Source of the DNA: Octopus sinensis
Lineage: Eukaryota
DNA: 64,000 nucleotides
Assembly (NCBI RefSeq): GCF_006345805.1
Contig: NC_043010.1
Location: 24,924,001-24,988,000 of the forward strand
Direction: 5' to 3'
The notes below the pieces were generated by a model. That model was not told the DNA's origin. It ran no database searches and saw only the letters and a list, made by a program, of their open reading frames with translations. This document shows positions 39,694-41,373 of the stretch, piece after piece; the stretch's first letter is position 1, and the number at the start of each line of letters is the position of its first letter. Made by a program: the position numbers and the translations under genes.

Positions 39694-41373
39694 TTAGTGA
39701 GACTCAATAGAGTCGATTCCCTTTATTTTATTGTGGGCGGTCCCACACTGTCTCAGCCAATTCCCTAAACTTGCGTTAAAAAACGAATTTCTAAAAGAGT
39801 AAAAAAAATTCTACCTTAGTAGAGGGGATCTAAAATTAACAGCAAGGCGGGCGCTTCTTCGATGGGCAGAAGAAGCAAAATGTCAAATCCGGGTTTAAAT
39901 TTATTTTATTTTCAGTTCCTATCGAGGCACGGCCCCCAAACCTTGCCACCTCCTCAAAAACAAAATAAAATAAAAGTTTTGAGGGGCATCCTGCACACCA
40001 ACCTCTCGGTCCTCGAAAAAAAAAAGAAAAAAAATTTTGAGGACTTCATCGAGGGGGTTTTATGTGCAGGATGCGATAGGAACTCTCAGGGTCAAATTCA
40101 GTATATGAGCCATTGGAATTACCTGCAGTGTAAATGGCTCTATACAACTGCAGGGAACGTTGATAACGGCCCAACGTGGTTGGGCAACACGCTCTTAACC
40201 CACAAGCCACCATCTTATACGGCTCCTGGCAACCGTGTGTTTCATACCTTATAGTTTAAGGATTTGGACTTCGCGGCATTTTCCAAGAGTACGTGGAAGA
40301 AAATCAAGAGTACAAGAGTAAGGAATCAAGCCCTGCAGACCGTAAGCCAACATCCTTCATAGCCAACCGAAATCCGCACACTAAGCCAAGTACCCTGCAA
40401 CAGTCCGCGAAGGGCTCAATACTGACGGTTTACCCGTCAGTTGATTGGCTCCCGAAGTGAGGCCAAAAGTGAGTCCACTCATGCAATAAATTTTGTGAGC
40501 CACAACAATCTGGCGTCAGGAGACAGCAATCGAGAGCCACCCAGGGACAGCAGCCTTCACGAGGCGCTAACTTGTGGGCGAGATAAGAGGCAGGATGGAA
40601 GCACCCCATCCCCACCTCGCCCTGTCAGCAGCCCAAACCGGACAGCGAACCCAGCCGTTCTGACCTTAACCGTCCGTGGGCGCCACCCCGTAAAATTCTA
40701 TATAGAAATGGGGGGCCTTCACACAACACCGAAGCCAGGTAGTGGCCGATCCGGATGAGCAGGAGGCCGACAAGCGCAGCCACGACCAACCAACAGGGTA
40801 TCATCCCACTCTGTAAACGAAAATCTTCCACACTGCTTGGTCCCCACCAAATAATTGGAACCGCTATGGGGAAAAGACACATTTAGTTTGTCCGCGGACG
40901 GGTTGGCGCCCGCAAAAGCCAATAATGGCTTGCGTCCCCCCCCCCCCCGCAGACGTAAGCTCTTAAACCACGACAAGGTAGTGTCCCCGTGGGTGAAGCC
41001 TGGCAGTGCATCCATCTCCCGGGTGAAACCCGGCAGATCATAACATACCAGACAAACTTGATGGTGCATCCACCCTCTCGCCTCGCTGCCAATGTTCCAA
41101 TCGGACACCGCAGGTGTGTATCCCCCTATACACCAACCACACCGGTGTTCCTATAGGACACCGCAGGTGCCCCCAACCGACTGAACCTTTCTGCCCCCAA
41201 CGAAACTCGGTGGGGTGGGGACAAATCGTATCAAATCGGCTATTCAATAAAGTTCACCCCAAGTGGATGAGCAGTAGGAACAACCACCCATGGCAAGGTT
41301 CGTGGGTCATAACCATCAAGCCCCACTTAAGAGAACCTTTCTGCCCCCAACGAAACTCGGCCCCACTTAAGAG
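39694..41373 (-). mobile_element. Putative non-autonomous R2-dependent element (SIDE-like), non-coding
   Basis: Has a 5' HDV-like fold homologous to the R2 5' end and a 3' motif matching the R2 3' terminus at 30 of 36 positions. It has 28S-derived flanks and no recognisable ORF. Confidence 0.7.
40873..41373 (-). ncRNA. HDV-like self-cleaving ribozyme (predicted)
   Basis: P1 CUCUUAA/UUAAGAG, P2 GGGACAC/GUGUCUU, P3 ACC/GGU, L3 UUGUCGU, P4 UCUGCGG/CCGCGGA and J4/2 CUAA occur in the correct nested double-pseudoknot order. Confidence 0.65.

Follow-up and report, generated by a model that had tools for sequence, protein, structure and literature searches.

A probable SIDE-type, non-coding relative of R2 in a ribosomal DNA spacer of Octopus sinensis

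Introduction

R2 retrotransposons occupy a canonical site in 28S ribosomal RNA (rRNA) genes, CTCTTAAGG|TAGCC, and R2 proteins read the region 22–34 bp upstream of the nick (PMC12222951). Non-autonomous derivatives of R2, the Short Internally Deleted Elements (SIDEs), are described in the literature we searched from Drosophila only, with 81% identity at the 3′ end (Eickbush & Eickbush 2012, PMC3414825). R2 itself is known in molluscs, according to the literature searched. Here, we describe a non-coding insert in a ribosomal DNA (rDNA) spacer of Octopus sinensis, located within a 64-kb window (assembly GCF_006345805.1, contig NC_043010.1, positions 24,924,001–24,988,000) that also contains an R2 element; the insert is probably a SIDE-type relative of R2. 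All features of interest are on the minus strand and are read here 5′ to 3′ in order of falling coordinates; positions are counted from the first base of the window.

Two further systems provide the background against which this locus can be read. In the lineage-A R2 element known as R2Tg, the minimal 3′ element consists of the terminal 65–67 nt, is built of two helices and a single-stranded linker, and is sufficient for priming and insertion; its single-stranded tract leads into the active site of the reverse transcriptase (RT), and 28S sequence also has to follow the element in the RNA (PMC12222951). At the opposite end, the R2 ribozymes of many animals, which resemble that of hepatitis delta virus (HDV), build the 5′ strand of the P1 helix from 28S sequence upstream of the element, and duplication of 28S sequence at R2 5′ junctions has been described as one way in which 5′ ends become extended (Eickbush et al. 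2013, PMC3774820).

Results

A non-coding insert at the R2 cleavage position of a 28S-like fragment

The insert spans positions 41365–39692 (minus strand, 1674 nt; limits set from the sequence and from motif positions) and has the same orientation as the 18S and 28S rRNA genes. The 28S 3′ end (41947) is 574 nt upstream of it, and the R2 element is 2.1–6.6 kb away, in agreement with the ~600 bp and 2–7 kb given in a preliminary description of the locus. The 28S-like sequence recognized there on both sides of the insert is indeed present, but the proposed range of 39694–41373 takes in CTCTTAAG and misses the final GG.

The upstream flank, hereafter piece B (41406–41366, minus strand), corresponds to about −41 to −2 of the R2 target and is 92% identical over 38 nt to 48034–47998. 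It reads ...GGTAAACGGCGGGAGTAACTTCGACTACTCTTAAG and ends in CTCTTAAG; its last bases, ...GACTACTCTTAAG| at 41366, coincide with the R2 cleavage position of 28S-type sequence, and the upstream recognition motif ACGGCGGGAGTAAC, located in the 22–34-bp stretch read by R2 proteins, is intact. On the other side, the 3′ terminus of the insert reads ...CACTAAGG and is followed by piece C (39691–39627, minus strand), which is 28S-like from about +36 of the target (91% identity over 43 nt to 43400–43358), reads TGAACGGATCGAAGG...CCCACTGTCCCTATCTACTGTCTAGC and merges into a 140-bp spacer subrepeat through CTGAGTACGG.

The absence of a recognizable ORF (open reading frame) from this ~1.7-kb minus-strand segment, noted in the preliminary description, was borne out. 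None of the 10 ORFs in the insert, the longest of up to 130 aa, matched Pfam, and tblastx against the R2 coding sequence yielded no match, the sole similarity being to a non-coding 3′ motif. For a decayed second autonomous R2, considered from the outset as an alternative, no coding trace was found: neither tblastx against the neighboring R2 nor Pfam revealed remnants of zinc fingers, RT, CCHC or RLE domains. Rfam searches at E up to 10 and a tRNA search recovered no family and no tRNA, respectively, and by the same searches the polymerase III heads of short interspersed elements (tRNA, 5S, 7SL) are absent; a regular expression for the hammerhead core likewise found no match. The insert has no tblastx match in the rest of the window, and in a self-comparison it matches nothing else there outside the R2-like blocks described below. 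Two spurious ORFs of the insert are not on record by exact look-up.

As an observation in its own right, the 3′ half of the insert contains dense perfect hairpins at 39950–40090 (minus strand), for example, CCTCAAAA...TTTTGAGG with U-rich loops, GCATCCTGCACA...TGTGCAGGATGC and GCTTCTTC...GAAGAAGC.

A 3′-terminal RNA module shared with R2

The insert is clearly homologous to R2 at the 3′ end. Its final 68 nt (39759–39692, minus strand), comprising the block UGGCUGAGACAGUGUGGGACCGCCCACAAUAAAAUAAAGGGAAUCGA with the hairpin GUGGG/CCCAC, a second hairpin and the tail UCACUAAGG, correspond to the last 73 nt of the neighboring R2 (43522–43450, minus strand). The two termini share a 47-nt block with 39 identities (83%), TG.C.GAG...GTGTGGGACC.CCCACA.TAAA..A.AGGGAA.CGA, and the homology of this terminal motif to R2, proposed in the preliminary description, thus holds (39/47, z about 10.5); none of 1000 dinucleotide shuffles aligned as well, nor did any of 200 reach the score in nhmmer. 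As to whether the terminal similarities are significant against shuffled controls, the 3′ block clearly is (0/1000 and 0/200), whereas the 5′ block is marginal (5/200). The core 20-mer GTGGGACCNCCCACANTAAA occurs, with up to two mismatches, only at the insert and R2 sites in the 64 kb, where none would be expected.

The two RNAs are also predicted to fold alike. Both form hairpin 1, GUGGG-ACCR-CCCAC, with 6–7 bp and a 4-nt loop. Next come an A-rich linker of 17 or 18 nt with GGGAA at its end, hairpin 2 and, finally, a tail of 9 or 7 nt whose last bases are GG. The second hairpins are unrelated in sequence (GACUC-UAUU-GAGUC at 39714–39701 in the insert, UUGCGGA-UUAAUU-UCUGCAA in R2), and the distance from the end of the block to the 3′ junction is 19 nt in the insert and 26 nt in R2.

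The start at the R2 nick position, the rRNA orientation, the R2-type 3′ module and the lack of coding capacity together lead us to regard the insert as a SIDE-type element, that is, an old, internally deleted, non-coding relative of lineage-A R2 that depends on R2 protein in trans, a reading to which we assign a probability of roughly 60%. The position of the insert, its lack of coding capacity and the homology and architecture of its 3′ end are direct observations. Under this reading, the insert would retain the ~60-nt 3′ RNA module that is bound by the R2 reverse transcriptase for target-primed reverse transcription, as well as an R2-like 5′ box whose complement is found in the 28S bases immediately preceding the insertion site. 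R2-type machinery would have placed it in rRNA orientation at the nick position CTCTTAAG|, and the site of insertion would have been a 28S-derived fragment, about 0.57 kb past the 28S gene, that keeps the upstream recognition motif. Mobilization in trans by R2 protein, processing by a ribozyme and insertion in situ are the steps that we infer. The SIDE-like interpretation of the preliminary description therefore stands with respect to R2-site placement, rRNA orientation and the 3′ module, but not with respect to an R2-homologous, HDV-like ribozyme at the 5′ end.

R2-like blocks and a candidate ribozyme in the 5′ region

A ribozyme core homologous to R2 at the 5′ end, as initially proposed, was not confirmed: Rfam is negative and BLAST between the two 5′ ends finds no similarity past the 28S part. 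Profile comparison with nhmmer recovered two blocks. Block 1 aligns 40982–40949 of the insert with 48005–47972 of R2 (minus strand, 34 nt), a score reached by 5 of 200 shuffles. Block 2 aligns 40293–40111 with 47690–47510 in the R2 5′ untranslated region (UTR; minus strand, 1.2 bits), and 1 of 200 shuffles did as well. The earlier statement that the middle of the insert bears no similarity to R2 was hence nearly right, save for this weak colinear match of ~180 nt to the R2 5′ UTR. Together with the 3′ block, blocks 1 and 2 form a colinear series.

In block 1, each element has 7 nt perfectly complementary to the 28S sequence adjoining the site (AAGAGAG/CUCUCUU in R2, UUAAGAG/CUCUUAA in the insert), directly followed by a GCUUAC(A/G)UC hairpin in which an A-U pair is replaced by G-C through one compensatory change. 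Given this 28S complement with its hairpin, and the P1 helices based on 28S sequence in known R2 ribozymes, the block 1 region appears to be the most plausible ribozyme remnant.

A candidate HDV-like core that includes the R2 5′-like block can be drawn at 40988–40868 (minus strand) from nhmmer, a structural descriptor and local folding. The candidate P1 pairs CUCUUAA at 41373–41367 or 41333–41327 with UUAAGAG (P1′) at 40966–40960. The candidate P2 pairs GGGGACAC (40988–40981) with GUGUCUUU (40880–40873) over 8 contiguous pairs, 3 of them G-U; alternatively, with a UUUU bulge, GGGG pairs with CCCC at 40871–40868. The candidate P3 pairs ACC (40979–40977) with GGU (40969–40967) around the L3 loop UUGUCGU (40976–40970), and the candidate P4 pairs GCUUACGUC (40960–40952) with GACGCAAGC (40936–40928), with a loop of 13 G residues. 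This G13 run, at 40948–40936, is a conspicuous feature of the insert by itself.

A strict HDV-like descriptor, designed after the candidate had been seen, has exactly one solution in the insert and is also passed by 20 of 400 shuffles (5%). A loose descriptor matches both elements as well as 48–75% of shuffles and was rejected as evidence. RNA fold z-scores show no overall difference between strands along the insert, and only 41005–40886 stands out (z −3.9, minus strand only). In the candidate fold, J4/2 is atypically long (47 nt) and P1.1 is not evident; the counterpart of this sequence in the R2 copy starts only within the putative L3, such that an equivalent fold cannot be drawn there. We consider the HDV-like ribozyme of the insert a candidate, weakly above chance.

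The 5′ junction of the insert is complex: positions 41373–41320 (minus strand) consist of CTCTTAAGTGGGGC, an exact 28-nt copy of 41210–41183, and CTCTTAAGTGGGGC again. One possible reading is that the insert underwent 5′ extension, in which case ACTACCTT may be a relic of an older 28S junction. When anchored at the R2-homologous junction, this internal relic ranks 160 of 1646 against 28S and 48 of 1646 against piece B; without an anchor, searching the insert for 28S relics gave no significant result (z < 1).

Separately from these blocks, the motif CACCTGCGGTGTCC and its hairpin are doubled in the insert (41169–41156 and 41116–41103, minus strand, within 41085–41169), and a hairpin of the R2 5′ UTR, CGGTGT...ACACCG at about 47950–47930, resembles this doubled motif below significance. 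The corresponding candidate block, CGGTGTC...ACACCGGT, in the R2 5′ UTR and at 41160–41135 of the insert (repeated at 41107–41085), was set aside as unproven; its placement does not fit the colinear order of the other blocks, and nhmmer gave no match even at E up to 100.

The 28S-like flanks and the route into the spacer

Several observations weigh against the SIDE-type reading. The insert is located outside the 28S gene, inside 28S-like fragments of 41 and 65 nt, and about 35 nt of downstream target (TAGCC...GCGCA) are missing between the insert and piece C. The 3′ homology is short (about 47 nt, 83%), far less than in Drosophila SIDEs. Block 1, which represents the extreme 5′ end of the R2 copy, is marginal and sits about 385 nt into the insert; Rfam detects no ribozyme family and the descriptor matches are near chance. 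Furthermore, the 64-kb window contains a single copy of the insert, and no close relative was found in the collections searched (ORF look-up, protein and metagenome, with no eukaryotic genomes among them). A metagenome scan with the shared 3′ motif returned five unrelated chance matches, none with 28S flanks, and was discarded.

A third 28S-like fragment, piece A (41494–41419, minus strand), covers about +33 to +111 of the target and is 81% identical over 79 nt to 43417–43339. A lies upstream of B, in permuted order, with a short linker in between. A and C are 91% alike and have common changes relative to 28S (AAAGCAGAGC.GAG versus AAACCACAGCCAAAG), and judging from these changes they are paralogues. 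At both outer joins to subrepeat-type sequence there is microhomology, GGTGA upstream and CTGAGTACGG downstream. The 140-bp subrepeat aligns colinearly, if weakly, with the 131-nt unit formed by A, the linker and B (z 1.6–2.6; 3 of 60 shuffles), and its direct comparison with the 28S target is not significant. The ancestor of the subrepeats may have been a piece of 28S that covered the target region of R2 and R1.

In the preliminary description, the insert resided in its own mini-target. In such an in situ account, the spacer may have held A-linker-B units, with the element inserting at a join of the B|A type; if the weak kinship between subrepeat and A-linker-B unit is real, the subrepeat array would be a decayed series of such units. 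As an explanation of the flanks, this account has at least one equally good rival, namely, that the flanks traveled with the element.

The latter possibility is the best of the alternatives to the reading as a whole, although we consider it distinctly less probable. The insert would be the same kind of element, and A, B and C would have come along with it instead of serving as a target. This could have occurred through reverse transcription of an unprocessed 28S::element co-transcript at an ectopic spacer nick, the A-B join arising as the enzyme jumped from one RNA template, at its 5′ end, into the 3′ portion of another; alternatively, a 28S fragment already carrying the insert could have been duplicated into the spacer as DNA. 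The permuted order of A and B with their short linker fits such a route, as does the microhomology at the outer joins. The changes that A and C have in common relative to the 28S of this unit would point to one source, and an ACTAC variant is common to B and the internal 28S-like relic (rank 48/1646). End-to-end template jumps by the R2 reverse transcriptase are documented in vivo (PMC3414825). On the other hand, the weak colinearity of the subrepeats with A-linker-B (z about 2; 3/60 shuffles) is better accommodated by a pre-existing array, the lack of +1 to +35 from C calls for an extra deletion, and neither a target-site signature nor an empty site is to hand.

That the insert is a one-off dead R2 remnant, which lost its ORF by deletion or rearrangement, decayed where it stood or following relocation, and never propagated as a non-autonomous family, appears rather unlikely. 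A single copy in the window, a defective host unit (with ITS1 fused to mid-28S) that harbors a frameshifted R2, and colinear R2 similarities of the sort that an internal deletion would leave are all compatible with this scenario. However, R2 similarity is undetectable outside about 260 nt, whereas the ORF of the dead R2 next to it is still readable; divergence combined with a kept 3′ module and a 28S-complementary 5′ box points to a separate lineage selected for mobilization, and three nested motifs resembling 5′ junctions suggest repeated rounds of insertion. Finally, that there was no insertion at all, the segment being plain spacer between 28S-derived repeats with a 3′ block that stems from gene conversion or an ancient 3′ fragment of R2, is very improbable: duplicated gene fragments are common in spacers, the empty site is not to hand and the fold z-scores of the insert are not strand-specific overall, but the segment starts exactly at CTCTTAAG| of a fragment that keeps the R2 recognition motif, carries an R2-type 3′ module 0–68 nt from its other end in the same orientation, and has significant homology to the R2 3′ end, spaced alike from the junction.

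Returning to the SIDE-type reading, the insert is probably a fossil copy, because its flanks have diverged from 28S by 8–19%, about 35 nt of the target are missing, the 5′ junction is rearranged, and both the host rDNA unit and its R2 are defective. The low similarity to the neighboring R2 outside about 260 nt argues for a long separate history instead of a recent deletion and, together with the limited 3′ homology, raises the possibility that the true partner of the insert may be another R2 lineage.

The neighboring R2 element

The R2 element (47997–43450, minus strand) encodes three N-terminal zinc fingers, RT, CCHC and RLE domains, spread over three frames; its ORF is split by frameshifts at two places, near 45.88 kb and near 44.49 kb. 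The solved structures in the PDB that best match its protein are R2 proteins (E = 3e-73), with lineage-A R2Tg ranking above R2Bm; its identity as an R2 is solid, and it is assigned to lineage A. The best match in a protein search for close relatives is only 37% identical, so that the host lineage is not represented in that collection.

Upstream of the element, 28S sequence runs to ...GCGGGTAAACGGCGGGAGTAACTATGACTCTCTT at 47998 and R2 begins at the next base; downstream, 28S picks up again at 43449 with TAGCCAAATGCC. The 5′ end of this copy is GTCGCGGCAAGAGAG, and its 5′ junction, CTCTT|GTCGCGG, is without the AAGG of the target. The copy may be 5′-truncated inside the ribozyme region, at a CTT microhomology.

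The rDNA unit and its surroundings

The 18S rRNA gene (50718–48575, minus strand) was identified with Rfam at a score of only 719 bits over 2144 nt and is either much expanded or decayed. On its 3′ side, the sequence reads as about 400 nt resembling internal transcribed spacer 1 (ITS1), after which 28S resumes mid-gene near 48175. The unit is thus without 5.8S and without the 5′ ~2.2 kb of 28S, ITS1 being fused to mid-28S. The 3′ third of 28S is annotated by Rfam at 43338–41947 (minus strand), together with two small 28S pieces up to 43466. Past the 28S end follow, in order, ~390 nt of unique spacer, a partial 140-bp subrepeat, the block of A, B, insert and C, and the 140-bp array. The partial subrepeat, which is diverged, is upstream of A (41560–41497, minus strand), whereas the array (38581–39627, minus strand; 7.5 copies, 98% alike) is directly downstream of C.

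A stretch of ~360 nt at 38571–38210 is 76.5% identical to 52140–51792, just upstream of the external transcribed spacer, and TG-rich microsatellite is present outside both copies (36600–38200 and 52290–52500). The DNA beyond both sides of the rDNA unit is AT-rich and contains fragments of other long interspersed elements. Given the missing 5.8S and 5′ 28S, the outer repeats and the AT-rich, transposon-rich surroundings, the 14.3-kb unit looks like a solitary or edge-of-array, defective copy.

The fragments of other non-LTR (long terminal repeat) retrotransposons at 20902–26351 are on the plus strand and in several frames; they comprise RT (20902–21513), AP-endonuclease (24091–25318), RT (25213–25674) and zf-RVT (25626–26351) pieces. 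A palindromic stretch at 52893–52982 yields sub-threshold matches to microRNA precursors on both strands (mir-1265, 35 bits versus a gathering threshold of 79) and is most likely just an inverted repeat.

Discussion

The analysis of this locus has implications for the parasitism of R2 and for its target requirements. If a SIDE-like element accompanies a lineage-A R2 outside the group in which SIDEs are described, parasitism of R2 would be shown to recur. The putative parasite and R2 share just the terminal ~60-nt 3′ module, which corresponds to the minimal element sufficient in avian R2 engineering. If the insertion occurred in situ, the locus would represent a natural experiment on the minimal R2 target, a 41-nt fragment with the first ~35 nt downstream absent, and would also document that R2-type insertion can take place away from the 28S gene.

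A more far-reaching possibility, which we regard as decidedly improbable, is that the spacer is an array of 28S-derived R2 pseudo-targets, the best-preserved unit of which was colonized by a non-coding R2 parasite. The 140-bp subrepeats would then be decayed 28S sequence of +36 to +120 joined to 28S sequence of −46 to −2, read-through by RNA polymerase I could transcribe the parasite without inactivating a ribosomal gene, and the spacer would serve as a safe harbor or a sink for R2-type insertions.

Comparison with known systems

Among the closest known systems are the Drosophila R2 SIDEs. As in these elements, the insert is non-coding, starts at the R2 cleavage position in rRNA orientation, has a 3′ end that is homologous to the end of the R2 3′ UTR and adopts the same predicted fold, and combines a central part without R2 similarity with irregularities of the 5′ junction of the type seen in R2. 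The differences are nevertheless considerable. The insert is three times longer (1674 versus 529 nt), its 3′ identity is confined to about 47 nt, and its R2-like 5′ block, with the candidate ribozyme, is ~385 nt internal; moreover, it resides in a 28S-derived fragment of the spacer instead of the 28S gene, has no poly(A) tail, and its host is not an insect. Owing to its length, the short 3′ homology, the internal 5′ block, the missing poly(A) and, above all, the spacer location, the insert is not filed as a plain member of a SIDE family.

With the R2Tg 3′ element, the insert has in common a terminal module of ~60–67 nt made up of two helices, an A-rich linker and a short single-stranded end; this likeness is one of architecture only, as described in the text of the published study. 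A transcript of the spacer copy would carry 28S sequence from +36 onward instead of from +1 onward. If the requirements of R2Tg for downstream 28S sequence apply here, such a transcript would make a poor template for insertion into genuine 28S sites, which adds to the grounds for considering this copy a dead end.

Compared with the HDV-like ribozymes of R2 (PMC3774820), the candidate in the insert has a 7-nt perfect complement to upstream 28S, a 3-bp P3, a 7-nt L3 that starts with U and contains C and G, and a P2 that can be drawn with 8 pairs. Its J1/2 would be about 380 nt, a length covered by the published values, which extend from 23 to over 700 nt, and the duplicated 28S sequence at the 5′ junction conforms to the 5′ extension model. 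By contrast, its J4/2 measures 47 nt, no G-G follows P1′ for the formation of P1.1, cleavage would occur at −9 instead of the common −28, and the fold is without covariance or Rfam support (at the gathering threshold and at E up to 10, neither a ribozyme of any class nor a family for the R2 3′ element was found) and without an equivalent in the neighboring R2. Taken together, these comparisons portray the insert as a credible, rather unusual relative of a rare class of elements.

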